A DNA stretch of 64,000 bases from Bugula neritina (lineage: Eukaryota > Animalia > Bryozoa), in the NCBI GenBank assembly GCA_964035545.1, contig OZ037767.1, forward strand, positions 19,980,628 to 20,044,627. Reading direction: 5' to 3'. Below are positions 13,660 through 59,900 of this stretch, piece by piece. How positions within the stretch are numbered: the stretch's first letter is position 1; each line of letters opens with the position of its first letter. The notes beneath the pieces were generated by a model that did not search any database, was not told the origin of the DNA, and saw only the letters and a list, made by a program, of their open reading frames with translations. The position numbers and the translations under genes were made by a program.

Positions 13660-21498
<7,839 letters not shown>

Positions 21499-24437: not shown

Positions 24438-25290
24438 GTTTGTTTGTTTGTTTTGTTAGAACCTTTAGACCCCTATATATGGGGAAGTGAAGGTTTTCAG
24501 ACCTGTGATTGTTGATTACTACAAGTCTTATGATCTTAAATCTCGTGAAGTGCGATGGACAAAACTGTTGTGCAGAAAACTGTTACTCGCAGCAAGAGCA
24601 GGTGGTAACTCTTTGGTGGCAGTCTGGACATTAGTTTTGGAATCACAGGCCACAAGTTTATCAAAGGACTTGGCTAATGACGAGTGAGCAGAGTTTCACA
24701 AGATTCTTGAAAATAACTTAATCGTAGATGTTTTCCTTCTCTGTTTAAGCGGCATTAGTTTTAACTGCTTTAGTTTCTCACACTATCTTGACGTCCTTTC
24801 ATATTGCAAATAAATCGCACGGCCTTTCTTTGCACCTGTTCAAGATGTTCAACCTGTCTATCCAGATAAGGGTCCCATATTTCCGCTGCATAATCCATAA
24901 TAGATCTGCAAAAGGTTATGTAAGCAATTAGTTCAACTTTTTCTGGGACTTTATACAGGGCACTTTTCATCATTCCTAATTTTTGGCTGGCTTTAGATGT
25001 AATGTTATCAATGTGCTCGTCCCACTTAAGGTTGTTACTGATTGTAACTCCCAGATATTTGAAGGAGTCAACGCACTTTAGATTCTTGTTATAAAGACTA
25101 TAATTAGATGGAACCTCACTGGTATTTTTGTTTTTACGCATACAGAATTTAGTTATGTAGCACTTATCAATGTTGAATTGCATTTGGTTGCTAGTGGCCC
25201 ACTCTGCTAATTTATTGATATCAGATTGAAAACTTATTTGGTCACCATTGTTCCTTATAGTCATATAAGCCAGGGCATCATCAGCAATAG
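24438..25290 (-). mobile_element. 3' fragment of an L2/CR1-group LINE (RT C-terminus, (CAAA)n tail)
   Basis: ADDALAY...LAEWATSNQMQFNIDKC...YLGVTISNNLKWDEHI...YAAEIWDPY...LEQVQRKAVRF; gtttgtttgttt at 24438-24455 is a simple-repeat tail. Confidence 0.85.
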
Positions 25291-25479
25291 TAATATTAAT
25301 ACTTAATAATAGTAATAATAAAATACTATTGTCATGGTATTGTTTGGATTGTTTTTCTTTATAAGTCGTATTCTTTTTTTTGTGTTCTGTCGATTTGATT
25401 ATGATTATGAATTAGGCAAGTGCAAAAATACAATTAAGGATTAAATTGTAAATATATTAGGAAACTCAGCATTTGCATG

Positions 25480-26750
25480 TGCTCTTGTGTGCGAAGGTCA
25501 ATGGTAGTGAGTACGAAACTCCCAGTCAAAACCTGGTAGGTTTTTGGCACCGCTAACAAAATGTGGTCTGTAGGATATTTCATACAGATCTCTTCTAGAG
25601 TGTTAGAGAGCGTCTCTCATAGCAGCCCACAATTAGTTTCTTCCAAGTTCTGATAAAGGATTATTGAAGGCTATCTCAGACGCTCTGTGTTTTTGGTCAA
25701 CTGCAATATATATTCTAGATTACTTTTGAGTTGTAGTCAAATATCTGATGGCTTTTATTGTACTATCAATGTAGGCTTCTTTGATGCAAACAATGTCTAT
25801 CATGGGCTACGAAATAGAGTTCAACTGTTTTGCACTTCAGGGATCTGGTGTTCATGTGTTGAAGAGTCTTTTTTTCGTTACATGGTGTTTATGCCAGGTC
25901 TTTTTTTAACTGGCATATCTTTACAGTCTCCCGAAGTTTTACTTTGGATCTTCTGAGTAGTTTCGTCATTCTCGTTCATTTGTTTGATTTGCTCTTTCAG
26001 TTTGTTCTGCTGGTCTCATTAATCTAACCTAAGCACATAATCTAACCTCGCTACCATTCTTGACAATAAGTCAGTCTCATTTTCTGACAAACTATCTATT
26101 TAGCAGGAACTTTATCTTGCAAATTTATTGGTAATTGACGGACTAGCTGTACTACTGGCTGAATATTAGTAGGTCTTGAACTATGTTCTCTCTATGAAGT
26201 TTTCCCAGGACTCAGTTGAGTCACCGAAGAATGATGGTAAGCTATCTAGGTTTGGTGCTACGCTAGTTATTATTTGAGTATGGAATGGGTTAATAGTGGG
26301 TATGCTGCAGAAAGGTCGTCGTTGGTATGAAGGGACTTGTAATGTGGGTGTCATATGTGATTGGGTTGTCAAGCCATGATGTGTAATCATAAGGCTGTGT
26401 GTAGGGCCAGTCGACGTGTTGCTATTTATGCAGTCCCGTCATAGTTCAGGTGTTGAGTGAGTTTCAGAACTTCACTATTTCCTCTTTTGAGGTGGGTGTG
26501 TGTAATGTCGTTTCGTATCTTGTGCCTGTATCGTAGGATGTTGGAGTCAAGTTGGACATGGTGGTTGTTGCTGGCCATGGGATGTCAGTAGGGTCAGATA
26601 GGACAGTTAAAGTTGGAGTAGTTGTCATGGGAGGTTGTGTGATGGTGTCAAGAAAGCTTGTTGTAGGAGGGGGAGATGAGGTTGGTTCTCCTGAGGTAGC
26701 CAATTGTTGTTATCGGGTTATGCTTCGTATCACTGGCCTCTTAGGCTCTT
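25480..26750 (-). mobile_element. Degraded gypsy-type gag region
   Basis: LPSFFGDSTESWENFIER capsid-like motif (26181-26390) and a broken CCHC knuckle (FC*RCQKP...) near 25530-25570. Confidence 0.55.
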
Positions 26751-27750
26751 ACTACTCATACAATATGTGTGCTTGTTTATTGATTGTTATGTTTAAAAAT
26801 TATTGGTACAGGTATACTTCAAGTATGTTTGTGTGTGTAATTGCTTTGTAATCAGTCACTGTTGTAATTAGTAATATAATTAATTAGCTATCTAACAATA
26901 AGCTGGAACAAAGTGGGCTTTCTGTTCTAGTAAGATAATGTAATTAATTAACACCACTATGATTATCCGTGGTAATTTGTAATTACCTTGGGAATGTGGA
27001 AATTAGATGGTATGTTTTTCTAATTATGCCAGTTAGTGAAACGACAGTTTCTTTTCCTAATACATTGCTGATGGAGAAGGCAATTCCTCTTCTTTATCAG
27101 CTGTAATATTGAAATAAATTTCCTGCTTTTTTAATGAAGGTAATTATTAAAATTTGAGTATTAGATAGTTAATTGCAGTGAAATTTCAAATTTGGCCAAA
27201 CTGCATTTTTGACGGAAAACCAGGAAGGTATAAACGCATCATGAGACACCTGCTATAAACCAAAATATATTCATTTTGTCAATAGAATTAGTAAACAAAA
27301 TACATTACCTCCAACAAACAAGTTAGTTAAAGACAGAGCAACTAAAAACATTCTCTGCAACCTTGACATAACTGATACTCTGTATGTTTAGGGCAAACTC
27401 TTCTCTCCAGTTTTTTGTCTTGTATTCTGAGTCAGAGATGGTCATCTTATGGTGGTAATCGTAGAGCAAACAATAGCTAGTTTGTTCCTACTGTCACAAT
27501 TATCACTATGAGACCAGCTGGTGATTTGTTTCCCTGAGACCCAGTCATAAAACCAAAACGCTAAAAATTTTATTAGGTGAATTACTAAGATATTAACCAA
27601 GAAATGGATATTTGAAGTATTTTTATGAGTTGGGTTTACCATCAACTAGAATGTTGAATATTGTGTATATGTGAGTTTTGCCCACACTTTGATCACAAAG
27701 TAAAGTTAGACACAATAAGATACAGCATTGTGATTGTTAGCTGTACATTC

Positions 27751-28261
27751 CTATACGGTGTGGTAGGCTGTGAAGCATTTTCTATTCTCTGTAAAGCATA
27801 GTCTCACATCGCATTCCATGCACACTTTACTTGTGAGTTTACAGTGAGTTTTACTGGCCAGTGTGCAACTTCATCTACGGCAGTCTCTCTGGATTATTTT
27901 CGGTTGTACAAGTGAAGGAATAAGATCATGAGCTGGTTAACCAGCTTTCCTTCTTTCTGTTTTTGCCAATCCTTCAGCCACTATCGCTTGGAACCTATGT
28001 CTGTTGAGCATTTTTATTTCCGATAGGCCAAGTAGTGCGTAATCTCTTCTCAATAGGTTCAAGGAGTTCGCAAAGCCATTCAATTGGAAGTGCCAGAACA
28101 AATAAATGTATCACCTCCAGCTTTCATCAGAAGCCTGTACCGAGCAGAAAATTTATCTAGGAAGTCGATGCCACCCATGTGCTTGTTATAGGGACCAACA
28201 ATTGCTGGCATGGGTACATCAGCTTGATTTTTTACCACCTCCATCGTTTCGCTACCCCTCT
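27751..28261 (-). mobile_element. piggyBac transposase C-terminal relic
   Basis: VPMPAIVGPYNKHMGGIDFLD (third catalytic D motif) and Cys-rich tail CMECDVRLCFTENRKCFTAYH*. Confidence 0.88.
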
Positions 28262-30890
28262 TCAGACTCGTGACCAATTTCTGTAGAAAGTAATGTCACT
28301 TGTTCTCGTAAGTTCTCTGGCCCACCTGTGAGCTTCTGGGACGTCCCGATGACTCAAGAGCCCTTTCCCTTCATTTGAAAGATCTAGCTTCTCCCTCCAG
28401 ATGTTGACTATACTTTCCTTTGATGAAACAATCTTTCCTGCAACAACAGGCGCGGCCAAGTCTCTTAGCTCAAGTAACACTCCTACCCTGGAGCCATGAG
28501 TCTACACATCCTCTGATGTTTGAGCATTGGTATTAGAAGTTTAAGGGCCGGCACTCCAAGCCCTTCGTCCTCAATGTCGACGTGTAGGACCACGCTCGAA
28601 CACTGCTCCATGACCTTGAGCCATCTCTTCACTGATGAGCGAATTAGGTAATCTAATGCACTCAACGGCTTGGAGGATGGCTCAAGTAGTACCAATTGAT
28701 GGTAAAACTTCGGCACAAAGTGCTCTCTTGAAAGGAATAATCTTTGTTGAGGCTTTAGTGGCGCTCGAGACAGCCTCTCTAACCCGATGGTAATCTCCTT
28801 CCTAGAGTTTGACCCCTTAAATTTCACACCAACCTGGGCGCCCGGATACCAGTAAGTATCCGTAATGGGTACAGCCGGCACCTCGACCCCATCCACCGCC
28901 AAAAAAGGTTTGCTGTCTGAGTACCACTTGCCTTTCCTTGCTCCAATACTTATTGTTGCACTTTTACTTGGGTTTGCTACAAACCCCGCTCTACTTAACT
29001 CATTAATTAAAAGCTCTGTGTTGACGCCCAGACCCTCTTTACTTTCATCAGAAAGGACAATGTCATCAGCGAAAGCCATGTAGGTAATCGCCAGGTCAAT
29101 TACAGTGTTGAACAGGTGCACGAACATATAGTCCCCCTGCTTGATTCTTCTCTTTGATGTTATGCTTTCAGACAATGTATCCCCGGGCACCAGTCTCGTA
29201 CTACTCATTCAATAAAACTTCGAAAAGTACTTAACCAAATGTTTTGAGATACCTAGCCGCTTACAAGCTGTCCAAAGTGCACCGTGTCTAATGCTGTCGA
29301 AAGCCTTGCGCATGTCCAGAAATGCTAGACGGAGGTACCGACACTTTGATTAAGCATCACTAATGCATTTCTGCAAGAGTAAAGAATTAAAAAAAATTTC
29401 ATCACCCTACCGAAATCCTTTCTGACAGTGAGAGATTGGAAGCAAACATTCCAACCTCCCTCCCAAGATACTGTGATAGAGTCATAAAAAGACAGAACCC
29501 ACCGTAATGGGCCTGTGCTGACTCGGATCAGCAGTATCCGGGGCCTTCGGTTTGGGAGTAGTCCTCCCCTCGCATATTCTGGGTGGAACAGAACCTAGGT
29601 GAAACCAGAGGTTGAAAAGAGAGGCGAGTTCCTTCACCTTGTTGTTCTTGAGCATCCGCCACGTCAAGCTATCCAGTCCCGGTGCCCCACTACTCTTCTG
29701 AGAAAGGTATTTAACTACCTCCTCTTCCGAGATGGGGTCCATAAGACCGTCTAGCCTGACTTGGGGATCGTTGTACTCCGGCGCATCGATTGGAAAATTT
29801 TCTCTCCAGCAGTTTGGTCTAAGACTCCTCTGCGCCTTCAAGGATAGAATCCTTGAGTTCAAGGCTATCCTGAAGAATACCACTCATGAGACGCTTGGGG
29901 TCTCGGCAGAACATCTTCAGTACTCATTTAAAGAGACGTCGACGTCTGCGATGACTCGGAGGAGTCATCGAGGGAGCCCCAAGGTCTCCATCCTGCCTGA
30001 TGGCACCACCGGAGCTGGTTTTCCGAACTGCTGGAAAGAGCCTCTCCAGCGATGTGTCGAGCACATTTTGATCTATGGCGACATTTTCGTCTGTGATCTC
30101 ATCTCCGAAAATGAGAGACTCTTGTGTCTCTTGATGGCGAATAATTTTTCCTTGACTTGAGATTCGATGAGTCTTCAACTGATTGCGTTTCGGGCATATT
30201 ATCGGCTCTAGCCTATTCTTCAGCAAGTAGCTAAGAATATCTTACTTTTTTATTCCTTTGTCTTTTGATCTATTTAACTGTATACTCAGGAAAGCATTTT
30301 TCCAGCTCCTGAGTAATATGCTTTACTCCTTGCAGTTTAAGTTTCACCTCCTCTCTAGCCAGTTTCATCAGCATTCCGTCGTCCCATTTTAACTTTTTTT
30401 ACTTTTTTTCCAGCTTCTACCTGATGTTAACGCTCCTCGCGAGTTCTCCTCAAATGTAGAGAGAGACCACGTAATGAGCTATATGCTGTACCACATGGGG
30501 TGCACTGGTAGAAAGTGCAAATTTGACAGATCCCAGGTCTGTCTGAGCCCCAATCTGAGTACTTTGAAAATTCAACAAAATTCTCCACTATATCCCGATC
30601 CGTCCCGGTCGAACAACTACAGTTGCCTAACTGCTGCTCTGGGCACACACCTGCATCGACAGAGGTACAAACCCCAGTGGGGGTTTCGTTACGCCTATGT
30701 TTTGCTGGCATATCCTCTGGATTAAGAACCTCAGTTCTAAAAGAAAAAGAAAAAAAGGCAAACTGAGGTAATGCACTATTAGCCGCTGGAAAAAGGCCAG
30801 CGTTTCCGACTCTCACCACGAGGAGGTCATGCCATCTCACAGCGGCAATGTCGATTGCTTCCTGGTTTTTTATAATTATATGATTCTCGA
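28262..30890 (-). mobile_element. R2 non-LTR retrotransposon, lineage A copy 1 (5' UTR, ZnF, Myb, RT; frameshifted, 3'-truncated)
   Basis: CCHH finger, Myb-like region, GAPGLD, QHRPITV, IKQGD, MAFADD, LSRAPLKPQQR; HDV-like ribozyme core upstream. Confidence 0.9.
30771..30835 (-). ncRNA. HDV-like ribozyme core in R2 5' UTR (P1 5' strand missing)
   Basis: Minus strand GCAUG-ACC-UCCUCGU-GGU-GAGAGUC-GG-AAA-CGCUGG-ccuuuuu-CCAGCG-GCUAA-UAGUGC gives P2 (with one bulge), P3/L3, P1 3' strand, P1.1 GG, P4 and J4/2 with the catalytic C. Confidence 0.8.
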
Positions 30891-31373: not shown

Positions 31374-32705
31374 TTTTTTTTTAAACGCGTGTCTTCCCTC
31401 TATCCGAGGGAAGGAACAGGTTCATTAAACCATTTTGATGTCAACCCATGGCTGAGAGGCTTTTGGAAAAAGGGATTTTTACCGGCCTGTCTTTCAGGGG
31501 TAATAACTGAAAAAATTTTAGAAAATATATGACAATGTAAATTGTCCTACCAGTCAATCTCCTCGATCTCATTCAATGTCACTGTCGATTTATTCCACAT
31601 GTCGTAGATATAAACTCCATACTGCATTGTTCGCAATGACAGTATTGGTAGCTCTCTTATACTGATGAAATCCTTACAGAATTTTGCACTTTTCTCGCAT
31701 ATTGCTCTCCTCCAATTCATGATGAATCCTGCTATCGACACCTTCTTCTTTTGACTTACTTCTTTTGCAAATGTCCATACCTTTTCCACGTTGTACTTAT
31801 CCACTTTGCCTTTATAGGGTACTTTCAGAGCCACATGATCAGAGACGATGACTATGTCTAGCACCTTCACCTCGTCTGAGACTTCGTGCCAGTACACTAT
31901 GTCTGGTTTGAGCAACCCTGACGCGTCTCTGATATGTGGCTCCGAATGCACCCCAAACCCTTGTTTTTCTAACCTGTTACATAAATATTCTACTATGGTG
32001 TTGTGCCTGTGTACACGTGGTCCGTGTGATCGTGGGCATGTTTGTAATATGTGACTGAGTGTGTGTGGGGTGTTGATACATACTGGGCAAAAAGCCGAAA
32101 CACCTTTATTTATTCTATTCCTTAGCGAGTTGGTTACTAGTGTTTTATATCTTAGGTGATTAATTCTAATATAATCCTGTCCGCTCAATATTCTTGTTGG
32201 CTCTCGTGTCCATCGGTGTGCTTGTGGTACCTTATCATGCTCAGCCAGGCCTTTTCCATCGGTTGTATTTATCATCTTTTCCTTCCATAGGTTTTCTTCC
32301 TCTTTTTTTGTTCCCTATGCTCTTTCCCATGATCCTGGGCGGCGCTAGCTCCTTTGGTTCAATAACAGCATCGACTAACGGGTCTCCGTAACCTGTCAAG
32401 CGAGCAATTCTCTCAAATCTCAACCTCCTGATTGTGTATCTGAATGATGGAATCCCTAGTCCTCCCGTGTTAACCGGTGCGTAAAAATTTGCACTGGCAA
32501 AATGAATATGCACCTTCAACCATTTCTTACATTCTGCTCGCACTATATAATCTAGATGCGTCAGTACTTCTCCAGTTGGAGGCGATAAGATGAGTGCGTG
32601 ATAGTATTTAGGTAATAAAAAGGTTCTTGGTAAAAATAGCCTTTGTTGCGGCTTGAGGGGTGCTTTTGATAGTTTCTTTACAGATGACTCCAAACTCTTC
32701 AACAT
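31374..32705 (-). mobile_element. R2 3' half (thumb, CCHC knuckle, restriction-like endonuclease, 3' UTR, poly-A)
   Basis: KAPLKPQQR, GGLGIP, CPVC...HILQTC, RHN, EPHI...KPDIV...D...KVDKY; A9 tail at 31374-31382. Confidence 0.9.
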
Positions 32706-33400: not shown

Positions 33401-35599
33401 TTAACAACCACATCGGCCTCATAGGGTACCATTATTTTGCTTAACATTGTTACTCCTAAAGTTGTTGTGTTTCTGGAACTTGGTAAAGTCGTATTCTGTA
33501 GGAGGATTAAACCGCCATAACAAAAAAATTCACTTTAATCATGTAAACTAGAATAGTTATTAGCTATTAACTTCAACTCAACACGTACTGGTACTTTGAT
33601 ATGTAACGAGTATATAGTAGTCTTTTTTATATGTCCTTCACTGTCGAACTCCAGTGGTAGACTAATTCTACGCCGGAAACTCGCCTACATATACAATCTA
33701 AAAATTGAAGCAAATAATGGAGCTCCGAAAATCGATATCTTCTGACTTTTGGTCAAAGATTGGCTCACAGTACACAAAAGAAAAACTGGAGAGGTAAAAG
33801 CAAACAGTCAATTATGCCAAGGGTGTAACAGTTCAAGCAAACAGAAACTACTTCATTGCAATTACAGAATATGTTGTAAATATATCTCCCAAAATTTACC
33901 AGAATATAATACAAGTGGATTTTTTCGACTCAATTCCACATTTTTTTTAAATTGAGATGAGTCTGCTCCTCCTGGCATATTTCTTCAGTTGTTTCACTTC
34001 ACTTTGTTGTGATGAAATTATTCACATTTTTGTTTTTTGTTCTATGTCTTACTTCATAGACATTTTTTTCTCAAATGCAAGCTAGACAATTAGCTTGATA
34101 TAATTATCATTAAAAATTTAGGGGAGGCACTATTGTCAGGTGCTCTGCATAACCTAGCCAGCCTGCAGCAGCAACCCACCTCAATGAGCAATATTGTAAT
34201 TAAGATTCTCCATATTACACTGAATAACAAACGCCATGTTAATAAAAATTAAACATGTGTGCTGTGATAAGTTAAGCAGGTGTAGCAATTATTGTAAACA
34301 TACTTATAGTTTAAATACAAATACAAAACTAACTATACATGCACATATATGAATGCATATGCACTGTAAAAGCAAAAAGGAATTCTTTTCATTTCGTGAA
34401 AAATCTTGGGATTTCGTTCTTTAGCCCTGTCATACTCGATCTAAACTTTTGACTCGAGTTTTCTGAAGCAGCATTGACTTTTTTAGCAACTTGGTGATCT
34501 ACTTTGTACATGTATTATTATAGATATATTACCAGACATTTTACACCAAATATTGTGTCTTTTGGCAAGAAATTATTATTGGATCCCTCAACAACTCTGT
34601 GATATTTCGTTTGATAACTTTCTGAAAGTCTTAAACTGTTCAACAGATTTTCATTCTGTCACCTGCAGTATGACAAACTATTTAGATTGACTCTTCTGGA
34701 TTTTACCGTTTACCTTTTCCACCTTTTACTCCATTCTAGCCATGTTTCTAGCAAGAAGACAAGCTCATCTGGAAGACTGAGCTAGAACTTGCTGTTAGTC
34801 AACTCTAAGGCTATTTTTCGAATGAAAATATATTGAAAGTTGAAACTGAAAAAAGTCACAATTATTTATTTTATTTTGCAGTGGCTACCTTGTTGTGCTA
34901 TCTTGTGGAAACTGCTTTTTGTGTATTTATGCCTCCCCCCCCCCCCCCCCAGTAAGACAATGTAGTTATACAAATAGTCTGGAGAAGGCAACTTCATAGT
35001 AGCAAGTATTACAACGCCCATTGTTCCAAAGTGCATAATCTGCACCAATCAATTCTGCTTACTTGAAGCTTGACTTCACCAATGGATTTGTGTTCACTTG
35101 CTCATCAGTCAAGTTTTTTACTCTGTACATCAGCTATTACCATATTTTGCGGTGAGTGCGAGATATATTTTATTCCTATCGCACGGGTCATGCTATGAAC
35201 TTTTGGCCACATTTTATAAATCTGCTGAATGATAATGAAGTTTTTTCACCCTCAACTATGGTTTCTCGATTTCATAGCATATCGAACTCTTCTGCTAGTC
35301 TATTTTTAATCGTAGTGTTTTAGTTTTCTCAAATTTATAACAAAAGCTGTAGTAAAATGTCATCTTAGCATCTGCAAATATTGTGGAAATTCAAATATCA
35401 AACACATAAAAGATAATAAATTTGAATATTTCTGTCTTACTGGTTTTTGAGTGCAAAAAAGTGCCGAAACGTGAATTTGCTGCGGAATCTGAGGCCAACT
35501 TCGGTTTGTCTGCCGTACAGTTTCTAAATATAATTAATCTTCTTAATACATTTTCACTTTTTGTAGTACCAAAAACTTGCAGCATATTTCTAGGCAACT

Positions 35600-40630: not shown

Positions 40631-40639
40631 TTCCTGCTG

Positions 40640-44060: not shown

Positions 44061-44099
44061 CCATTTAAAAATCTTGAGCTGCCATTATTTTATTATCAT

Positions 44100-46365: not shown

Positions 46366-49300
46366 AATTCGTGACGCCATTAATTTGCTGATACTTTGGA
46401 TGAAACGACGATTTATTGTACTAGGCGTTGGTCAACCTGTACGCTCCTATAATCACGGTACTCCTAGGCTAATGGAAGGCCCAGTCGCCTTCTCAGTAGA
46501 TTCAGCGTCGAAGAAAGCAGTGTACCGGGTGCCTGTTCCCACTAGTGCAACGGGGAGGCAGAACGGACCTCCGGATCACACCCAATTTCATGCATCTAAT
46601 GCTCCACCCGGAGCGCGCGCATATGTAACCGTTGGGTGATCACGTCTCCTTTTGGGCACTTTTTCGCCTCAGCTTGGCGTTGGGCTACGTGCTCAGCAAG
46701 CCCTTTCCACTCTTGACAAAGAGCTTCATCTCACACGGGGTGCGCGATGCAAGAGCATAGCTGGGGATAACCAACGCCCCACGCATATCCACATGGGCAG
46801 ATGCGCCGGGTCTGGACCCCCAGAATCTTCCGCCACTATCCTCCTCCATAGTTTGTCCACATGCGCCAGATTAACCATCCACCTGACAGAGTGCGTAGTG
46901 AGATGATGACAAAATCACATACAGTGAAACCTATCGCCCGCAGAAAACCCGCGCTTGCTAGGCTCACTGCTCCTCTCCAGTTGAGGATCGTACTTCCAAA
47001 TTGCCAGGTGGCCTCTTCGCACAATCCTCTGCACCATTGACGAATCTCCGGGCAGTCATAATACCTGATATTTTCTTGATAGGCCCTATCGGGATCCCAT
47101 CCATCTCCCGTGATGGCAACATCACACACAATTGCTTGGTCACCCCTCCAAGCCACAAGATCAGGTTTGTGAAAAGTCTGATGGTAAGGGATGATTGGTT
47201 CCTCTAGCACGGAGAAACGTAATCTGCGCAACCTTTCAGAGACATACTTGGCCACGTGGTTGTGCCGTTTAATACGTGACCCATGTGAGCGAGAGCAAGT
47301 TTGTAGTATATGACCTAGTGTGGCCGTATGGTTTGGGCCACAGGTCAAACATTTGTCTGAGTGATCGCGATCTATCCGATGCTTCCTGCTCGGCGTAACT
47401 ACAAGGTTCGCTCTCAAGAGAGTTCCCCTTACATACTCTGCACCACTGACAAGTTCGACACTGTCGGATAAGACCCGAGCATGAGCTTTTGGTACTAGGT
47501 TGTGGTGGACCAGGCCACAACCACCCGCCGACTCATGGAGTTTCTCCTCCCAGCTTTTGACTCTAGGCGGCACCCTTTGATCCAGGGCATTTGACCTATT
47601 CAGAGATTGAACTCGACCCGAGCGTAGGAACGCAAAATTGCGTTCCCCACCGACTTTCGTGAAGGAGCCAATGGGAAACACTATCCTCGTACCTCATGAA
47701 CTGCCGAAGCCTTCTCTTGCATAGTTCATGAATTTCCAGGAATGAGGGGATATTTGATCCGCCACTCTTACTGCAGGCGTGGAACAAGCCCTTCGGTGAG
47801 CTGTGTGGTAGGTGTAACCACCTCGACACAGCTCTCCGCCCCAAAACATCTAGTCTCACGAGTAGGCTCTTCGTGGGATCCCCCAAGACAAGGCTGTGAG
47901 TGAGCCTTGGCAGCAGATGCGTTCTAAGGATCTTCATGCGTTGCTGAAGTTCAAGTGGTGCAGAAGAAATATTCTGCAACCACTTCGTGATGGATTCGGT
48001 ACAAGCGCTATACAGCTCCCTCCTCTCATCACGCCTAGAAGTACCGACACGAATGCCAAGGTACTTATAGGTCTCCCCAGCAGCGAGCGATGGTCTGGCT
48101 TGATCCTTGACGCTTAGAATGGATGGGTGAACCACCCACCTCCTGCCTGCTTTTTGCTTATAGACACTAATGTCCACAGGGGCGCACTTCCTTGGGTTCA
48201 CCTCCAAACCTACCCTACCCTACTGAGATGCTCGGTGTACGCAGTAAGAAGCCTCTGCAAATTCCGTGAGTTCTCAGCAAGAAGAACTACGTCGTCCGCA
48301 AAAGCCATGTGGTTTACTCTGACTTCCCCGTTTAACTCAACTCCCAGGGAAGAGTCTAGTTTCTTGACACAACTGTCAATGACAAGATTGAACAAGAAAC
48401 AACTGAGAGGGTCACCCTGCTTAACACCCTGTCGTACCTGGATCGGATCGCAAGCATGTTCGCGTGTAGGTAATCGACTAGGGGAGCAGGGACACCCGCA
48501 CTAGGCAAGACGTTGAAGATCGAAGCATGACTCACAGAGTCAAACGCCTTTTTAACATCTACATAGCAAACACTAAGAAGGCGCAACTTAGCTGGATCAT
48601 TGCGCTCTCTAATGATTGCTTGTAGCAGAGAGACATTGGTACCCACACCGTCACCTGGCCTAAAGCCCCTTGGCATTTCGGAGATCAGAACAAAGTTCTC
48701 GAATCTCCGAGCCAATATCCTGTGGTAGAGTCTGGTGAGACAGCTAGTGACAGTAATGGGCCAGAAGGCTGCCGGGTCATTACTACCCTGTACCTTAGGT
48801 ATCAGGGTAGTAAGCCCTTCCTTTAATGCTGTTGGCGCACGCGTCACTGCCATCCAGATGTTGAACAAACAGGCTAGGCGCTCACTGGCAACCCCTTTGA
48901 CCTGACTTCAGGACAACCTATCCGGACCCACTACGCCCTTAACGCCTCTGAGAGCTCGTGTAACTTCATCAGATGTAATGATACACCAATGTATCCTGTT
49001 CGCTTCCTTTGCTGAGCAACTCCCGCCAGAATGGCAAGACGTCCTTAAGTGCAGGGCCTTTCGTTGAACACCTCCAAGTATCATCCATGACTTTTTTGAC
49101 TGTCTTGCTACAGTCATCTTTATAACTCTTTTGGAGCTTCGCGTACTCGCGGCGTTTTCGCAGCTTTCCGCTCAGCCCCTCCAGAGATACTGTCTTCGGT
49201 GTTCGTTTGAAAGTTTGAGGTGTTGTCCTGGCAGGAAACAACACCCTCTGCAACAAATCCACAGCACCCTGTGGATTGTTCTCCAGTTGAGGCTTGATGG

Positions 49301-49900
49301 TTTGGGCATCAATCTTGCCATTAGTCCACTCAGCTAGGAACTTGAGGTCTAGCCTATCGAGTCTCTCACTCTTCCACTCATTCTGGCCTACGGTGAAGGG
49401 CCTGTCTTCTACTACCATGCTACTCGCTCCCACAGAGTTAGTATCCTTTGCAAGCCTAGTATCATTAAGCATTTGGTTGAAGATGTCATACCGTGCTCTT
49501 GCTTTAATCGCTTCTGCGGATCTGTTTGGGTGCCTCACATGCAAAGCTCTTTACAGCTGTGCTTTGACTGGGTAAGCTAGTTCTAATTCTACCCAGTCGT
49601 AGGCTAAATCGACTAATTCATACCTTTTCCAAACAGTCCGGTTCTTGCCCTCTTCTACAACCTCCTGCTCTCGCCCAACTTTCTGAGAATACCACTCCGT
49701 GTGCACGCTTCTCTGATGTTGTGAACATCCTACTTTGGAAGGATAGCGGTTTGTACACTCAGGATATCTGCAGAGCCACTTTGGCACGCAAGCACATGAG
49801 TACATGCGCGAGGTTCCCGCCATCTCTTCCCCACACTCATCGCACCGGCCCCGGTGGTGGTGTTGTTGTTGTTGTGTCTGGTGTTTTTGATACTTGAAAA
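46366..49900 (-). mobile_element. Near full-length degraded R2-type element, lineage C
   Basis: N-terminal CRYPEC...HQRSVH finger, Myb-like region, RT (FWPITV, DVKKAFDSVSH, VKQGDPLS, MAFADD), CLTC..HILQTC, RHN, KPDL..D endonuclease, ~470-nt 3' UTR. Many frameshifts. Confidence 0.88.
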
Positions 49901-50529: not shown

Positions 50530-53190
50530 GTAGAGGATTTTTATGGTGAGACGAGTGATCTAACGTTGCCTCTACACAACTACTTGTGAGGGTTATTGTG
50601 ATAAATGTATGACTGTTTTAACGGTGATAAATAATTCAAACTGGAAACTAACTAAATTCCCGCTGTACGCAGGCTTGAAGTTGACCTTTGCGCAGTTGGC
50701 CTCTAAACAAAATAATAATTTCAAGTTGAAAAAATCAAAGTGAGACTGACAGCTGACAAATCTTAACTTTTCTTGACAGCTCCATAGATAGTAGCCACAT
50801 CGCCCGATTGTAGTTGCAATGTTGCTACTTTGTCGCAGTTCGTTCTGCCTGATCCAGCTTTTACCGGTGAGGCAGAAGAAGATAATTCTTCCACCGGCAC
50901 TACAGAAGAAGATAATTCATCTGTTGTTGAACTCTAAGGCAGATCCGTTTTTTTACAAATTTCTGGCTGACCGATTGGATTTATCTCTGAGAAATTTTCT
51001 GTATCTACTAGATCAGCAGAAGATTCTAGTTTTGTTACCACTAGAGTTGAAAGATGATCCAAACTCTTAGCACAGCGAGGTCAGGCGGTGATGAGCTATC
51101 TGATACATCACTGCCAGCAACAAGTTCTGCTTTAGTAAGCCCCCCCCATCTCGAACGTCCATCTACCGGCATTGCTTGCAATGATAGCAAGTCCTTCTGC
51201 TGAGACCATCAGTATTTCCATGGTGTATTCCCTTCCAATGTTAAATTTTGTATTGGAATTCTCCTAAGAACTCCAGCTACTTTGCTACTTGACATGAAAG
51301 TTCTTTCCTATGGTGCAGCCACAGCAAAGATGCATGATTAGTTCGAATTAGAAATTCTCAGCCATATAAATAAGGTCGAAAGTGCTTTACACACTTAATT
51401 ACAGCCAGAAGCTCTCGTCTGGTAACACGGTAATTACGTTCTAGTGGGGTGAATGTCTTACTATAATAGGATATCTATTGTTCTCCATTTTGAATCTTGG
51501 ACAAGACTCCACCAACACCGTCTGCGTCAAGAATATAGAAAGCTTAGGAACAGGGTATCCAAGCACGTGTGAGGCTACAAGAAATATTTTCAAACTATTA
51601 AATGTTTGTTTCCAATCTCGAGTTCAGCAAAAAAAATGGATGGAGATGTGAGGCGATTCAGTGGACTCACTAAAGATGAGCAATTCGGAACATATTGATG
51701 GTAATAGCCCGCTATTCCAAGGAATGGTCTCAGCCCTCAAACATATTTTGGAATAGGCTACTCACAAACATTTTTAATTTTTTCTGGGTTAGTAGACACA
51801 CCATCAAAACTATGTGCCCCAAATATTTTATTTTCTCTTTGAAAAACTCACATTTACTTGGCTTCAACTTGAAGCCAGCAGCTTGTAGGCGTTCAAAGAC
51901 TACACGTAACCTCTTAACTTGGGAGGCTAAACTATGATATCATCCAAATACAGCATAAGTGTTTTCCAATGTTAATCTCTCTTTACGGTTTCCATTAGAC
52001 GCCTAAAACAAGCTGGGACAGAAGCAAAACCAAATGGCAACAAACGTCATTACCACAACCCATTTCTAGTTGTGAAAGATGATTTATGTTGAGCATCTGC
52101 ATCAAGAGGAAGTTGCCAATATCCTGATATTAAATCTAAAGTACTAAACACTTTGCTTCCTGCTAACGAACCGGCTTTTCAGGGCCTGGCAAACTAACTC
52201 AAGGGTACTCCCTCTGCCACAATCGGTTGCTGCCCCTTCCAAAGCACCAATAAGGTGCAACAGAGCTTCTGCATCTGTCCATCCATTAGCCTCCTTTATT
52301 TTTTGAAATTGCTGGAGATACAACTCAACATCTCAGCCATCAAATTTCTGTAATCTGAAGTTATATCTCCTACCTCCACCTACTCGCAGTAAGTCAACTA
52401 ATCTATCCAATTGATTTCCTTTGAACTAGAGATGGAGTTTTTTGAAGTCTACCAGGAGGCATTATGAGAGAAATGCAAAGTAAAATTTAAAATATTCAAT
52501 TTAAAAAAACAAGAATCATATAACAACTTATCTTCAATAACCAATCCCACTGCTGCCACCAGTCTAGAGGATTTTTTTGGTAAAGCGAGTGATCTAACCT
52601 TGCCTCTACACAACTATTTATGGAGGGTATTGTGATGAGTGTATGACTACTGTTTTAACGGGGATAATCTGTCAAATACAGTATCAACTGGAGACAGCAA
52701 GAAAAGATTATTCTCTTGCTGCCACAACCTGCCTTTATTTATACCAGCCTACAATATAAAACTGGTTATGACGGAGATAAGCAGTTACAAACCAGGCAAC
52801 CGCAACTAGTAATGAATAATTAGTTACTTGCAACCAATAACTACACTGAGATTAACAGTGTAAGTTATTGTCAACCTTGGACTAATTATAAAAGCGGTGA
52901 GCAATTATAATTAGACAACCTCCTAGTAGACTGAATATTGCTGTAGGTTGAGTGTATTTCTGTGTTTTTAGTTATCACAATCAATTTACCATTGCATGTT
53001 CAGGTTATGTAAAAACAAAACTCACTTGGATATGCTTATGAGCATTTTGTTATCGGTAATTGAAAACACGACCACGCTCAAGTAACTCAAACTAGAAATT
53101 AACTAAATTTCAGGCTTGAAGTTGACTTTTACGCAGTTAGTCTCTAAACAAAATAATAACTCTTAATTGTAAAACTCAAAGTGACAGCAA
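50530..53190 (-). mobile_element. Internally deleted gypsy LTR retrotransposon with two diverged LTR-like repeats
   Basis: Direct repeats ~50530-50755 and ~52562-53190; PBS-like TGGTGGCAGCAG at ~52550-52561 (minus); RT FSTLDLISGYWQ..PFG and RNaseH remnants at 51300-52170. Confidence 0.75.
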
Positions 53191-53941
53191 ATACAATTTA
53201 ATCTAAATTTTATAATTATAAAAAACCTATAAAAAGTAAATAAGATATATATATATAAAGACAAATCCATGACAATATTTTGCTCATGCTGATATTGGCA
53301 GTTTAATCTTAATTTTTTTATAAAATTAAACTATTAGTCATTTTATTGTTGATCGGTTAAGCTACTGGTGATAGAATACATTCAAATCCTACTTAAAAGG
53401 ATGCATAGTTGACCTCTATGCAATGGATAGAATGTGATGTATTGCTCGTGACTTGAAAGCTAGTGAAAAAATGTTACGGAACTAAATTGAATTGTGTTGG
53501 GGTTCTTTCTTGTGCATGCTAACTGTACGACAACTTCACATTTTTGTTTTATTCTGGTATCATGAGACAGTACTACATTCATTATAAAGCAGGTAGTTAC
53601 TTCAATATAAAATGCTGCTTTGGTAAAATCTCTAACCATACTGATAGGATATGAATAAAGTTTAGAAAAGCAATTGCGATTTTTATGAAATTTTTTACCT
53701 AGAGAAAAATGTTTCTACACTCTGTATTTTAGCGTTATCTCTAATGCAATACTTAAAAGTGTATTTTTTGGCGAAGTAAGATGAAGTAAACAGCTTGACT
53801 ATTTTGCTCTATATTTTCAATTTACTTCAACTTAATTTTGACTAACGATAGGATCCTTAGATAGTTAATAGTGATCCCTAAGCATCATATTTATAAAGTT
53901 TGTTTATAACCAGTAACATTGATTGTGTTGGTGTTGTAGTC

Positions 53942-56900
53942 ATGGGGGTACGCTTACACTTTGCTAGGAATAAAACCACAGCACAGGAAATTATTCAGTC
54001 AGTTGAGCCAGAAAATAGAAAAGACCTTCTTTTATATATTGACAATAATCAACGCACAGCCTTACACGCAGCGGTTACTCATGGCAGAATTGATGTAGTG
54101 GAGTACCTCTGTAATTTTTTTCCCAAGAACAATGAATTAATATTAAAGAAGGATTGCTATGGATCGACTGCTTTACACTATGCTGAAGACGGCGAAGTTG
54201 CAAGAATACTTGTTGAATCAGTTACTCCAAATAAGCAAAGAGTTTTAGTATTTTCTGCTGACGATGATGACTGTACAGCTTTGCATAGGGCAGCCTTATT
54301 TGGTAGGAAAAACGTTGTACAGTATCTATGTAATTTATATACAATCAAGGATGAATTGATACTCAAAAAGTATAGTGTAGGTGGTACAGCATTGCACTGT
54401 GCTGAAAATAAAGAAATTGCAAAACTCCTTGTAGAATCACTTGTGCAAGAAAAGCAAAGAGAATTGCTGTTATCTGCTGACGAAGATCATTGGACAGCAT
54501 TGCATAGTGCCGCTCACTCTGGCAAAACAGACATAGTAGAATATTTTTGTAGCTTGCAACAAATTTCGGAAATGGTAGTGATGAAGGCTGACGATGGTAG
54601 GACTGCACTTCATCATGCTGACAATAAAAAGATAGCAGCACTATTGATAGGGTCTGTTGCACCAGAAGATCAAAGCAGTTTTGTATTTGCTGCTGACAAG
54701 TCTCTGAATGTAGCTGTGCATACAGCTGCTCATGCTTGTAGAACTGATGTCGTGAAATACTTTTGTCACCTTTTCTCTGATGAAATAATATATATGACAG
54801 AAATTGACGGTTGGACCACTCTACACTGTGCTGGAAATCGTGACATAGCTGAGTTTCTTGTAGAGTCAGTGTCACCAAATGAACGGCGCAGCTTTATATT
54901 GTCGACTGAAAAAGACGGTTTCACACCATTGCACACAGCCTCAATACTAGGAAAGGCTGATGTGGTGGGATACCTGTGCAGTGTCTTTCAAACTAATTAT
55001 GACCTAATATTTGCACAATCAGCTAACCGGTATACAGCGTTACATGTTTCACATAACAGACAAGTTGTTGAAAACATTTTCAGTTATGCAGGGTCTCCTT
55101 TGGTAAAAGTTATCCTGGCAGTAGAGGACGATAAAGGTAACACGCCTATTCTATCACTGACTAGGTTTGGGCGATACGATGCTTTGGCAAAGCTTTTGGA
55201 GTATGTGGAAGAAGATGCTGACCCATCCACTTTATTCATTCATTTACAAAAGCACAATAAACTTAATCAGAATATTTTACATCTAGCAGCTTTATCGCCA
55301 TCTCTCAAAGAGTTATATGATGTGTTACAAGATTACCTTCCCGGGATAGATATGAAAAGTATGATGTCTTCTGATATATATAACAACACCCCTATTCACT
55401 ATGTTGCTGCCAAATATGACACTGCAGTATTTACAGATTTCATGCTGCATCTTCCTTTGTCAAAAAGACAGCGTATCGCAAACTCACCAAACATGCAGCT
55501 CACTAACTGTAGAATGATTATTAATCAGAAAGCCTTTAAAGAGCCATTTTACATTCATGATGTGCTTTGTGATGAAGCAACAAATACCTTAGTATCCAGG
55601 TTTGCTGATGTCCATTTGCTCTTTAACGAAGATTGGGAACAGAAATTTCAGCAAACGAATGAAATCTACGTGTATGATGAAAATATTCTCAAAGTGCTAA
55701 AATATTCTCTGAACGAATACTCACTCTTGGATGCTGCTTACATCACATCACACACTTTGTTCTCTTTGGCGGTCGACGAGCAAAAGTCTATACAGTTTTA
55801 TGAAAAGCAGAAAAGCAAAGTAAGAATACTGTTTCTATTGGTATTTTAGTAATGTTGGTTGTGCCCCTCTTTTGTGGTATAAAAAGTTTTACGCTTAGAT
55901 GCTGCAAGCTTCTAACTGAAATTAAAATAAAACCTTTATTTCTGATTTTTATTATCACTGGGTGTCAAAGTATTTTCAATTTTATTTTATAGTTGGTATG
56001 TGCTTATTGGTGCACTCATACTGAACTGGGTAAAGCAAAACAGAAACTGTGATGTAGAGAACTAGTAAATAAATTTTCCTTACTAGTGTAATCCAAGCGT
56101 CGATTGTTTTTTGGAGCAGCTTGGTATTAAAATAAAGGCCATCGCCTTTTTTAAGCCCTTCTGGCGATCGTAGGGAAGTTTGTTTGCAAAGCGCTCATCG
56201 AGAATACAATGGTATAGTCTGCGAAAAGTAGCGGTTACAGTGATTGGTCTAAATTCTCCTGGATCAGTGGTGCCAATGACCTTTGGTATAAGTTTAGTAA
56301 TTCCCTTGGGTATGCTTGATGGTGACATACCGATTACCAGCCACAGGTTACAACATGAGACGAGTAGTGTCATGTTTATTTTCTTAAGATCTTTCCATGT
56401 GTATCCATCTAAGCCCGGGAAACCTTTGTTCTTTTTTCCTAAAACATCTTCAATTTCTGTTGGTGTGATTGGTTGCAATAGTTCATTATAAACATGCTGC
56501 GCTTCTAGATGTCGGTTGTCAGCTGTTTACCTATCCTCAAATCAATGACTGCAACTCTCAGGTTTCTCCCCTTCTTTTTTGCGTCCGTAATGCATCTCTG
56601 AAGAATCAAAGCGTTCATGAATATTCCATCTCCCTTACGGAATCCTTTCTGCCTTTGTGAGATAGGCAAGAGTCGCTCTAGCCTATTACCCAGAATGCTG
56701 TGGAACAACCTAGTGAAGACAGAACACACAGTAAAGGGTCTGTATTCACTAGGGTCCTGTGTATCCACAACTTTTGGAACCAGAGTTGTCCTACCTTCAC
56801 ATATAGTTGATGGCGTTTTTCCACACAGGAGCCACAGATTAAAGAACGAGGCTAGTTCCTCAGCTTTGGTGTTATTCTTCAATTTTTTCCATGTGAACCC

Positions 56901-59900
56901 GTCTGGGCCTGGTGCTCCCTTGTTCTTGACTGCAAGCGCTTGTTCTACTTCTTGGGCTACTATCGGCGCCAGTAGCTCGTTTAGTTGTGGATGCTTTTCA
57001 CTACATCTAGGCATAGTTTCATCAGGGGGTCCCCTCCCTAGAAGCCCCTCCCAATACGCTTCCGCGCCTTCCGGTAGACACCCATTGCTCTGCCCTAGTG
57101 TACCCAACAAAATTTGGTCCACTAGTCTTCCTGGATCTTTTCTAAATAGTTGTTGTGCCTTTCTATACATTCTTCTACATGTCTGGTTTTTACCCACCAG
57201 AATTCCCTCTGGGATGTTCTTCTTGTTCGTTTGTTGCTTCAGGGGGGGAAACCTCCTGATGAAAGTTCTGTCTAGATACTCCTGTGTAAGTTCAAGTGGT
57301 AGGTAATTTTCATTACCGGATATGTGGGTCTCATTGATCGCTTCCTTCAGGGCTTTTCTATAATCTCCTTGCTCATCGTGGGAAGGTGATGCACTTGCCA
57401 TCTCTTTATTCTGTTCGCTTTCCCTCTCCTCTAGTATTTCTTTGTACCTTGCATTTTTGTTTCTTACTCCTTTGATTGCTTCTATGGTGTGTTCCCTAAA
57501 TTTTTCCTGCAGACGAATGTTTATGTTAGATCTTCCTTCCTTTTCAAGCTGCACCTCTTCCCTGGCTAGTTGTATGAGCATCCCATTAGTCCATCTTACC
57601 TTCCTAGCTCCAGTCTTTGCTTCCTCGTGATGGTATCTTTCCGTGTGAGATCTCCTTAGATGCTGTGATAGCCCTGCTAACTTACCATACGCTGACTTAC
57701 ATATTACACATTGGTGGAAACCACAGATCGTACATAGCCATGGTTGTTCATTCTTCCATTCCGCGTATTTATTTATTTTTACCATTGATATCCTTTTATC
57801 TGTTCTGGTAATACACTTTACATTACCGCATTGTTCTAGCGGGCAATCCCCTTGATCACCAGTGGTAGTGGCCTCAGTGGAGGCTGCTTGTCGCCTAGTA
57901 ACTGGCATATCCACTGGGTTTAGAACTAACGATGTTGAAGCTAGTTAAGTGCTTTTAGTCGTCTGTTAGAATAACTATGTTCCTCCAGTAGGCTTCGGCC
58001 GTAGGTGGAATTGAGGCCTCCTCATCCTCATAAGTGCCAGAGATAATCTGTTGAGTGATTATCTTCGGATCCGATTTTAAACCATTTTGCACTTTCTCTA
58101 ATATATCTTTTCTCCTACCCGATGTCACCTTTTTTCTTTGATGTATCACTTTCATACCTTTTATTGGTGTTCCTTTACTGGGGAAGTTTGATTCAAATAC
58201 TTCATCTATAAAATTTTGGCATCCAATTAAAGTTTTAGGGTCTGTCAATAATACCATTTTACTACACATTAAGTCAAAGTCGATGTACCTTAGTATGAGT
58301 TTGAAGTCCGTATTTAGTGCCCCTTATCGAGTTGGAGTGTTGTTAGAGTCTTCTTCGTTTGTAGATGTCAACCTACCTCCACTTTCTTCTTTTCGGATGT
58401 TGTCCAGAATTTCTTTATACTGTGGATTCTTGTTCCTCACTCCCTTGATCTGCTCTATTGTATACATAGGTAGTTTGGTTTGTATACGTTGGTTGATGTT
58501 TCTTGCTCCTTCGAATTCTTTCTCCCATCTGGCTACCTCTGATAGGGTTTCGTAGTTTCATCGTTGCTTCTTTACAATTGGCACAGCTGCATGATAGAGT
58601 TCACTGTGTGCTCTCCTGAGATGGAGCGAGAGTCCTGCCTGTTTTCCGAATGTGTGTTTACATACAGAGCATGTAAACTGACCACAGCTTTCACACCTTA
58701 CAGGCATCGAGTCCTTGAACGAAATATACTGCATCAGGTGGTACGTTTCTGTTGATTTGCAAACCGGATTTGCACAAATTATATTAACTGCACCGCTATA
58801 TGTGAGCGGTGCCTGTGGTCGAAGGTTTGTCGCCATGTTAGGACAAAACTGGCCTGATGGTAAGCCGACTTATCACAATCCAGAGACAATACTCTGGAAG
58901 GTGATAAAGAGAGATGCAGGTTATCCTGGCCGTCAGTCATCTGTCCTCCGTTAGCCACTGGGAAGGTGTCCCAGGGTTACCGACTCTCACCACTAGGAGG
59001 TGGAGGTACAACCTTTGATGCAAGGATATAGCTGTGATCAGCAGCTATATCAGTTGACTCTAGCTTTATAATGAAAGTTATGTAACTTCTCTTGCACCCA
59101 TTAAGTTTCACAATCTCTGCACAATAATATTGCATAAGTTTTTTGTCTATCATTTGGGACAATGTACAAAATTTGTTAAATGCACATCTTGGTTACTTTG
59201 TGCTCAAATGAAAACTCAGAACTGCTTTAAAAAGATTTGCTTTCGAGTATGTACAATCTCTTTGTGATTACTTTTCATTAGGCACTAAACAGGGAAGAAG
59301 ATTCTATTTCAGTCTTCATAGACATTGGAAAAGTAGATGAGCCAATACACACATCTGTACAAAATTCACTCAATACTATGGATCTGCCTGAATATAATGG
59401 TAAACCTAAGGTATAGATGGCACTCAAGTTGCTTATAAAGAGAGAAATTTGAAGTTACCCAATGACTGCAAATGTCGAAAGTAACTTAAGCATTTTGCAC
59501 TTTTCTTGTAAAAACGCAGCCCTGGCATAGCACATGTATTAAGCAGCGTTATTGATGATGTCTTAAATGGCATGTGATCATGATTGCTGCTCTAGTGCTT
59601 TCGAAATATTGTTGACATTTGTAAGTCCATCATAGCTTTTCTAAAGCCCTTGTCAGAATTCTTACTAGAGATGTGACTATAAATGATTATACTTATAATT
59701 ATGCATTTGTTTAGCAGAAATTGATAGCTCCTAAAACTCGCTTTCTTATATTTCATCTAATTAAGTATAAATAATCTTTTTCTCTGTGTTTCTCCACATT
59801 TTATTGTCTATGCAGTTCACTTTCTTCTTGTCTGTATTTCAAAGAGTAAGTATCTTTCTTTTGATATTGTGTAGATTTAAGCTACCATAATATCTTTATC

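Follow-up and report, generated by a model that had tools for sequence, protein, structure and literature searches.

How does a 29-kb gap between two plus-strand genes come to be packed with dead transposon fragments, every orientable one of which lies on the minus strand? The gap belongs to a 64,000-nucleotide stretch of a Bugula assembly (GCA_964035545.1, contig OZ037767.1), which we call the window and whose positions are used throughout. The initial annotation of this stretch had described a strictly uni-oriented patchwork of transposable elements (TEs), about 35 kb long, and had proposed it as a candidate piRNA cluster of the Drosophila flamenco kind. We, therefore, delimited the pile of fragments, recounted its insertions, compared it with B. 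neritina contig VXIV02001490.1 and with look-alike loci of the same genome, and weighed the explanations for its single direction.

Flanking Genes and Limits of the Pile

The pile proper extends from 24.4 to 53.3 kb, between a plus-strand kinase gene on its 5' side and a plus-strand ankyrin-caspase gene on its 3' side. In the upstream gene (13717-20022, +), eight exons encode a CaMK-like Ser/Thr kinase domain, which corresponds to aa ~15-315 of homologues of 440-530 aa; Pfam Pkinase is found on two of the exons, and the homologues were placed exon by exon with tblastn, the exons being left unjoined. Its conserved part stops by ~20 kb, about 4 kb ahead of the pile, and in the intervening 20-24.4 kb, a candidate region for the start of a transcript, there is nothing but the tail of the gene and simple repeats.

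On the other side, an intact 650-aa ORF (53942-55846, +; Pfam Ank families, E 4e-44) forms an ankyrin-repeat coding exon, the product of which is 94-95% identical to the Bugula proteins P0001 and P0022; the exon is also colinear with a contig from run SRR4020084. Its ATG at 53942 is preceded, 3 bp upstream, by a plausible splice acceptor (ttgtag), so that an upstream non-coding exon is possible. The downstream exons of this gene (59282-62046, +), on which EB796_009038 (P0022) was placed exon by exon, include a caspase exon at 61119-61406 (Pfam Peptidase_C14), and the alignment of the B. neritina protein P0022, after covering 55352-55822, resumes at 59282-59413. The stretch from 53.9 to 59.0 kb is an exon and an intron of the plus-strand ankyrin-caspase gene, not cluster. 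As this exon and a block of R2 sequence in the following intron (56094-59101) lie inside the ~35-kb patchwork initially proposed, the pile has to end at 53.3 kb; the TE relics of the longer interval are indeed all on the minus strand, but it also contains the intact plus-strand ankyrin ORF. A single giant kinase-ankyrin-caspase gene with the pile as one of its introns is unlikely, the ankyrin homologues having no kinase domain and the kinase domain being complete by ~20 kb.

Composition of the Pile

About 77% of 24.4-53.3 kb is TE-derived, and at least eight lineages are recognisable: a LINE, three LTR elements, a P relic, a possible piggyBac relic, a tandemised unknown repeat, and four R2 lineages. 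The three LTR elements make up ~5.6 kb and the R2 pieces ~9.6 kb of the 29 kb.

The leftmost piece (24438-25411, −), recognised by blastn to the element L012, is the 3' fragment of a LINE-like element; it has an open frame of 213 aa and shares 94-95% identity with a copy at C3:28.88 Mb. It gave no PDB or Pfam match, and its Atlas feature matches to RVT_1-associated clusters (score 0.93) are to be taken as a lead only. A microsatellite at 23875-24428 may be the tail of this fragment. Then come the 5' non-coding part and gag start of an LTR retrotransposon of L011 type (26189-27178, −; blastn to L011 3550-4520 reversed, running into the gag ORF, at 75% identity) and a possible piggyBac transposase relic (28119-28232, −). 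The piggyBac piece of the initial annotation comes down to this minus-strand relic of 38 aa, a weak tblastn match (E ~6e-5) to three piggyBac copies of the genome. An old P-element/THAP9-like transposase relic (35440-36264, −) carries Pfam TNP-like_RNaseH_N, has a tblastn E-value of 3.5e-16 and 70-78% identity to other copies, and is common to the window and B. neritina.

Two pieces of an L006-type gypsy element, the integrase side at 37018-37784 (−) and the gag side at 43029-44118 (−, present in B. neritina), both identified by blastn and tblastn, belong to one and the same insertion; they are split by a 5.2-kb tandem array, and the paralogue L019 is unbroken at that point. The array (37785-43028, no strand assigned), nested in the gypsy element, consists of about five copies of an 851-bp unit arranged as direct repeats in self-blastn. 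A short Cys-rich motif ending in DGNMKL, which recurs with the 851-bp unit and reads on the minus strand, is all that we found behind the KDZ transposon of the initial annotation, and neither Pfam nor tblastn backs that assignment. None of the 20 Pfam KDZ candidates of the genome falls in the window, tblastn with a KDZ-domain ORF from the same genome was null, and the Atlas search reached at most 0.79. Also inside the array is an R2B-like fragment (40345-40628, −). A seemingly plus-strand gypsy piece at 40626-41543 was discarded, its match being to the DNA that flanks a young LTR element at C4:14.50 Mb and not to the element itself, so that no direction can be assigned to it. The last piece of the pile is a single L007-type gypsy element (50531-53275, −; blastn, tblastn and self-blastn) that is internally deleted and retains LTR remnants at either end; its B. 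neritina counterpart is more complete.

R2 Elements outside rDNA

R2 is a non-LTR retrotransposon specific to rDNA, where it inhabits the 28S rRNA genes. The window holds 12 of the ~34 R2-type matches of the 216-Mb genome, in four diverged lineages, a local excess that fits a trap. Their identity was established with phmmer against Bombyx R2Bm (PDB 8gh6/8ibw): the window pieces gave E-values from 1e-29 to 1e-53, compared with 9e-99 for the reference copy L001; among them are 44808-46379 (E 1e-52) and 56508-57944 (E 6e-29). As in R2Bm, an N-terminal zinc-finger/Myb region, the reverse transcriptase (RT) and a C-terminal region can be aligned.

The first lineage A copy (28304-30820, −) covers the protein from its N-terminus up to ~aa 607, lacks its 3' end, and shares 78% identity with the copy on C8. 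It is followed by a 3' piece of lineage B (31381-32699, −) that comprises aa 439-708, the 3' UTR and an A-tail and shows 96-98% identity with other copies; after the A-tail only TAGCT of the 28S target remains here, as against a full target in the copy of L008. The second lineage A copy (44125-46365, −) has lost 0.7 kb internally, keeps an open frame of 524 aa, and abuts the 5' end of the gypsy element; head-to-tail with it stands a lineage D copy (46640-49856, −), colinear over aa ~111-708 and frameshifted, and both are absent from B. neritina. The block at 56094-59101 (−) is an antisense insertion in the ankyrin-caspase intron, outside the pile locus: the 5' part of a lineage C copy (56094-56541 and 57977-59015) encloses a co-directional 5' piece of lineage B (56534-57975). 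This block stands in place of 18 bp of the B. neritina intron, which measures 472 bp there and 3.46 kb here. Its left junction (56094) is spanned by an independent DNA contig, which confirms the assembly at that point; in the one public run found to contain this DNA, a DNA run of roughly 115x, the R2B piece is at multi-copy depth. The alternative already raised in the initial annotation, a long intron purged of sense insertions, matches what is seen at this block, the only one placed between exons of a plus-strand gene. A search of 58945-59015 for an HDV-like ribozyme returned no Rfam match at E<=0.1.

Unlike R2 at its 28S site, the copies in the window lie outside rDNA without a 28S flank, are truncated at either end, belong to four lineages, and are nested co-directionally. 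A search of the window for LSU rRNA was negative both at the Rfam gathering score and at E<=0.1, and the 20-nt 28S target pattern was not detected with up to 3 mismatches allowed; elsewhere in the genome, in the copy at C9:1.47 Mb, the canonical 28S target comes after an A-tail. A decayed rDNA array as the source of the common R2 orientation was rejected, as no rRNA remnant is present and two of the R2 sites are occupied by sequence other than rDNA in B. neritina.

One Direction, Fewer Events

That all detectable TE coding relics of 24.4-59.0 kb lie on the minus strand was borne out by every approach. We ran a Pfam scan that treats both strands alike, covering all stop-free segments of 55 aa or more in this interval: the 89 minus-strand segments gave eight TE-domain matches (RVT_1 six times, Integrase_H2C2 and TNP-like RNaseH once each), and the 86 plus-strand segments, excluding the ankyrin ORF, gave none. 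Searching with TE ORFs taken from other copies of the same genome yielded ~100 tblastn matches, all minus and all within 28.3-58.8 kb, with none in 1-24 kb or in 59-64 kb. Finally, a blastn of the window against itself revealed 26 direct and no inverted internal repeats.

The statistics attached to this bias are another matter. One has to keep in mind that the 17 independent pieces counted initially come from only ~9-11 insertion events, the six gypsy pieces being three LTR elements and the seven R2 pieces three or four blocks, arranged head-to-tail or as R2 inside R2. The chance of 1.5e-5 given for a common direction becomes, with 9-11 events, a two-sided p of ~0.004-0.001, before any correction for the 3375 windows scanned. 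As the R2 blocks resemble chimeric single events and the same order of pieces recurs in other R2-bearing piles, the count of independent events is itself uncertain, and could be as low as 6 (p ~0.03). The pieces are 70% to 98% identical to other genomic copies, and they thus differ widely in age, which implies that one direction was maintained over a long time.

Comparison with B. neritina and with Look-Alike Loci

Contig VXIV02001490.1 of B. neritina is colinear with the window over the compared span, 34.3-64 kb, at 81-91% identity. The old pieces (the P relic, both gypsy elements and the tandem array) are shared, all minus; two R2 blocks (R2A copy 2 with R2D, and 56094-59101) are missing from the contig, and both are minus as well. 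The two blocks are lineage-specific gains made in the same direction, which adds support to a cluster architecture. Over this 34.3-64 kb span (the contig ends before the left third), the position has been kept in the sister species while the TE content turns over. The annotation of B. neritina has no plus-strand gene model over the pile.

Within the genome, the pieces follow one another in the same order, R2, then an LTR piece, then a P relic, at the loci C8:5.17 Mb and C3:21.49 Mb. A plain segmental duplication of the pile was rejected: the look-alikes (L002/L003, L004/L005 and L019) differ in their junctions and have very unequal identities.

Discussion

We consider 24.4-53.3 kb to be, on its most likely reading, an intergenic transposon trap, and a candidate one-strand piRNA source locus, an interpretation that we favour while giving it somewhat less than an even chance. 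On this reading, Pol II would begin to transcribe the plus strand within the 3' region of the kinase gene or shortly after it (~20-24 kb) and continue across the pile, and the RNA would be processed into piRNAs that are antisense to the elements caught there. Oppositely directed insertions would have been lost because they would yield useless sense piRNAs or terminate the transcript. For the pile, we infer the transcript, its promoter, the piRNAs and the selection; the architecture, TE-dense and with its insertions on one strand, fits a one-strand cluster. Piwi-domain genes are found at ~4-7 loci of the genome, including a tandem set on C2 (AGO and PIWI clades counted together), and PIWI1 and PIWI2 are reported from Bryozoa (PMC11114477).

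Two other explanations have to be weighed against the piRNA source locus. Since the TEs run antisense to the genes on either side, selection by host transcription would account for their direction just as simply: the pile would lie in, or under read-through of, a plus-strand unit, and selection would purge sense TEs, with their splice sites, promoters and terminators, without any piRNAs. Such a unit might belong to the kinase gene, extended at its 3' end, or to the ankyrin-caspase gene, as a long 5' intron running from a distal first exon, which the acceptor 3 bp before the ankyrin ATG would permit, and the process is seen next door, where the R2 block sits antisense within an intron. All TEs being antisense to two co-directional genes, with one block intronic, also recalls the antisense TE bias known from introns of animal genes. 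Yet that bias is as a rule moderate, short of 100%, and weak where DNA-transposon relics are concerned, and here it is complete; no known exon or host transcript spans 24.4-53.3 kb, no plus-strand exon was found there, the conserved kinase part is over well before the pile, and the B. neritina annotation offers no gene model to bridge it. A kinase-ankyrin fusion across the pile is, as seen above, unlikely, and the plus strand of the pile is not depleted of poly(A) hexamers (45 AATAAA/ATTAAA on the plus strand vs 43 on the minus), a point that counts against the piRNA reading as well. We regard filtering by host transcription alone as unlikely.

The pile might otherwise be an ordinary TE graveyard, picked out among 3375 windows, in which a few independent events were coupled mechanically: chimeric R2 cDNAs formed by template jumps of the reverse transcriptase, nested insertion, tandem amplification, or an old duplication of a composite would each impose a common direction. 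Several R2 pieces are 3'-truncated or internal, unlike ordinary target-primed insertions, and are joined head-to-tail or one inside the other; every multi-match R2 locus of the genome is internally co-oriented; the 5.2-kb array is a local amplification; and the piece order repeated at C8 and C3 suggests shared ancestry or coupled insertion. With six effective events, a p of ~0.03 is unremarkable among thousands of windows. Even so, a conservative count still leaves an unrelated LINE, three LTR families, the P relic and no fewer than three R2 blocks, of differing ages, in one direction, and the two gains that postdate the divergence from B. neritina also lie on the minus strand. The look-alike loci, with their differing junctions and identities, are not plain duplicates. 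Moreover, RT neighbours in the genome show no strong general coupling of direction, 9 pairs within 60 kb being co-directional and 5 opposed in what is a small sample, the 150 best-scoring RT matches. On balance, we hold the graveyard to be unlikely too, though somewhat less so than filtering by host transcription.

How does the candidate piRNA locus compare with known ones? What defines a unistrand cluster is a population of 1U-biased piRNAs of 24-32 nt that map to one strand only, together with one long Pol II precursor that is transcribed from a promoter at one end. Flam-like clusters of Drosophila extend over 227-1085 kb and are enriched in antisense gypsy/ERV elements (PMC10643416), and FlaHMM predicts such unistrand clusters from strand bias (PMC11400887). 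Like them, the pile is a TE-dense locus beside a gene, with nested and truncated copies inserted opposite to the putative transcription, and its position is conserved between related species while its content changes. Unlike them, it is dominated by R2 fragments and spans 29 kb and not hundreds of kb. In Drosophila, small-RNA data also show that antisense TE insertions in host transcripts serve as piRNA sources (PMC13226689; bioRxiv 10.1101/2025.07.28.667215); the R2 block at 56.1-59.1 kb, antisense in an intron of an expressed-looking gene, and the pile, directly downstream of a plus-strand gene, are similarly placed, a likeness of geometry only.

In the literature searched, we found neither a small-RNA study of a bryozoan nor a description of a bryozoan piRNA cluster. 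A wider proposition, which we put forward as doubtful, is that Bugula carries a whole set of small (17-35 kb), strictly one-directional traps that would act as unistrand piRNA loci, the first clusters in Bryozoa, and that the present one would specialise in catching, outside rDNA, chimeric cDNA fragments from several rDNA-specific R2 lineages, and so supply the host with antisense guides against elements otherwise hidden in the rRNA genes.

Should the pile prove silent, it would teach caution, as a complete bias in ~10 insertions would then be possible without piRNAs, and strand-bias predictors would need genome-wide baselines. In either case, four R2 lineages heaped outside rDNA, co-oriented and partly chimeric, bear on how site-specific retrotransposons reach ectopic sites. 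If small RNAs confirm the locus, one-strand, TE-antisense piRNA clusters would not be confined to flies and would also exist in a lophotrochozoan phylum for which no clusters have been described; at ~30 kb, this would be a compact form of cluster, easy to dissect, and its recognition would open a sequence-based route to such loci in many new invertebrate genomes.

Direction and Limits of the TE Pile

The TE relics of the window (C3:19,980,628–20,044,627) all point to the minus strand, as the initial annotation had stated, and this holds with Pfam on both strands, with tblastn, and with self-blastn. In the strand-symmetric Pfam test, which took all stop-free segments of at least 55 aa in 24.3–59.1 kb, none of the 86 plus-strand segments (ankyrin ORF excluded) carried a TE domain; among the 89 minus-strand segments, RVT_1 was hit six times, and Integrase_H2C2 and a P-element-type RNase H domain once each. 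Using as tblastn queries the genome's own TE open frames, taken from other copies of the window repeats, we obtained about 100 matches in the window, all on the minus strand, with none in 1–24 kb or 59–64 kb; self-blastn of the window returned 26 direct repeats and no inverted one.

The one-direction stretch (the pile) was nevertheless overstated when first drawn at 24438–59011, which includes a host gene. An intact ankyrin-repeat ORF (650 aa) lies on the plus strand at 53897–55846, with an ATG at 53942, and over its last quarter it shares 94% identity with EB796_009038, a caspase-domain protein of B. neritina. The latter maps on the plus strand to 55352–55822, 59282–59413, 59964–60071, 60290–60964, 61152–61779, and 61966–62046, with Peptidase_C14 (Pfam) in exon 61119–61406. 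This ankyrin-caspase gene spans 53942–62046 on the plus strand, and one of its coding exons contains a 24-bp tandem repeat (60539–60754). Because EB796_009038 maps on both sides of it (55352–55822, then 59282–59413), the block of R2 lineages C and B at 56094–59101 must have inserted, in antisense, within one of the introns of this plus-strand gene. The first intron measures 472 bp in B. neritina versus 3.46 kb in the window, where it is enlarged by the possibly chimeric R2 insertion; in place of the 3.0-kb block, B. neritina has 18 bp, and the left junction of the block is spanned by an independent short-read DNA contig. Upstream of the pile, eight kinase-domain exons of a CaMK-like kinase gene lie on the plus strand at 13717–20022; the intron immediately preceding exon 18567 holds a 100-bp tandem repeat (18201–18551, 3.5 copies, 93% matches). 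Exons were mapped individually and not joined into gene models. The pile proper is 24.4–53.3 kb, flanked by these two plus-strand genes.

Number of Independent Events

The 17 independent pieces counted initially come down to 9–11 independent, orientable events. The six gypsy-type pieces reduce to three LTR elements: those at 37018–37784 and 43029–44118 form a single element interrupted by a 5.2-kb insert, as its paralogue at C3:21.49 Mb is continuous across the 37784/43029 break; 50531–53275 is one element of which both LTRs leave remnants; and the third is the piece at 26189–27178. The insert (37785–43028) consists of about five tandem units of 851 bp, each with a Cys-rich motif ending in DGNMKL on the minus strand; several units also occur at the orthologous site in B. 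neritina. The proposed KDZ transposon, drawn from a short motif in this unit, is not supported: Pfam, tblastn, and Atlas searches all came back empty. The possible piggyBac relic is 38 aa long. With 9–11 events pointing one way, the two-sided p is about 0.004–0.001, in a window picked from 3375, in place of the earlier 1.5e-5. Elsewhere, at C4:14495001–14508000 (loci L021 and L009), an LTR element with two 100% identical 345-bp LTRs interrupts another copy of the repeat found at 40626–41675 in the window.

R2 Pieces in the Window and the Genome

R2 identity is solid: against the solved Bombyx R2 protein, pieces from the window reach E values of 1e-52 and 6e-29, while the E value of a reference copy is 9e-99. 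The seven pieces belong to four lineages (A–D) sharing only 30–55% amino-acid identity, but they are grouped in blocks, all on the minus strand. The first R2A copy (28304–30820) adjoins a 3' piece of R2B (31381–32699); the second (44125–46365) stands head-to-tail with R2D (46640–49856); and the 5' part of R2C (56094–56541 and 57977–59015), uninterrupted in another copy at C7:12.78 Mb, is split by a 5' piece of R2B (56534–57975) nested in the same direction. For an HDV-like ribozyme considered at the R2C 5' end (58945–59015), Rfam returned nothing at E ≤ 0.1. Ordinary target-primed insertion retains the R2 3' end; as several window pieces are without it, the R2 blocks may be single chimeric events. 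After the A-tail at 31381, only TAGCT of the 28S target remains, and no rRNA remnant was found anywhere in the window.

Across the assembly (216 Mb, 321 contigs), an R2 protein used as query gave about 34 R2-type matches at about a dozen loci, 12 of them in the window, and every locus with multiple matches is co-oriented internally. The R2B copy at C9:1.47 Mb (L008, C9:1469001–1476000) has the canonical 28S target behind its terminal A-tail, so this region carries rDNA-type sequence. Three other co-oriented R2-bearing piles exist (C3:19.72, C3:21.49, and C8:5.17 Mb). R2, an LTR piece, and a P relic follow one another in this order and in one direction at C3:21489243–21492494 (L019) and C8:5167001–5184000 (L004/L005/L020), with other junctions than in the window pile and very unequal identities (70% to 96%). 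The patchwork at C3:19714001–19732000 (L002/L003), 250 kb upstream of the window, has an R2D copy interrupted by nested R2B pieces; R2D in the window is uninterrupted.

Comparison with B. neritina

Window proteins are 94–95% identical to those of Bugula neritina and non-coding DNA is 81–91% identical, which points to a bryozoan near, yet distinct from, the sequenced B. neritina. The comparison contig (VXIV02001490.1) has its end at the equivalent of window 34315 and is colinear from there through the window end; it has the P relic and the tandem units as well as both gypsy elements, and all its TE-protein matches are on the minus strand. As these old pieces are common to both, the pile is older than the split. 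Missing from B. neritina are 56094–59101 and 44118–49866 (second R2A and R2D), the latter replaced by 1.1 kb of unrelated sequence; the window lineage has gained at least two R2 blocks since the split, both in the direction of the pile.

A Candidate piRNA Source Locus

The only public run containing the window DNA is a DNA run (about 115x), and our literature search found no bryozoan small-RNA study. Piwi-domain genes, which may be of the AGO or PIWI clade, occur at several loci: four tandem plus-strand copies within 43 kb at C2:12874319–12917145, and others at C4:9.39 Mb, C2:7.08 Mb, and on C216. Together with the report of PIWI1 and PIWI2 from Bryozoa (PMC11114477), they make a piRNA pathway plausible in the host. 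The pile resembles the flam-like clusters of Drosophila (PMC10643416) in strand bias, nesting, and conserved position with turnover of content, but is about 10 times smaller and R2-rich where those are gypsy-rich. Poly(A) hexamers are not depleted on the plus strand of the pile.

Two other readings have to be weighed. Chance combined with mechanical coupling of insertions, to which we give a rather low probability, would fit the nested and possibly chimeric R2 blocks; among the best 150 RT matches, neighbours within 60 kb share their direction in nine pairs and oppose in five, a small sample that hints at no strong general coupling. Filtering of orientation by host transcription, for which we see somewhat less room still, would fit the antisense block in the ankyrin-caspase intron. 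If some 10 events are independent, a one-strand cluster makes the complete bias far more probable than chance or a moderate antisense bias in introns does; if coupling brings them down to about six, all three readings come close, and our weights therefore derive from both cases, the remainder going to causes we have not thought of. We tentatively favour, at somewhat below even probability, the reading of 24.4–53.3 kb as a candidate one-strand piRNA source locus, a reasonable hypothesis on sequence grounds.
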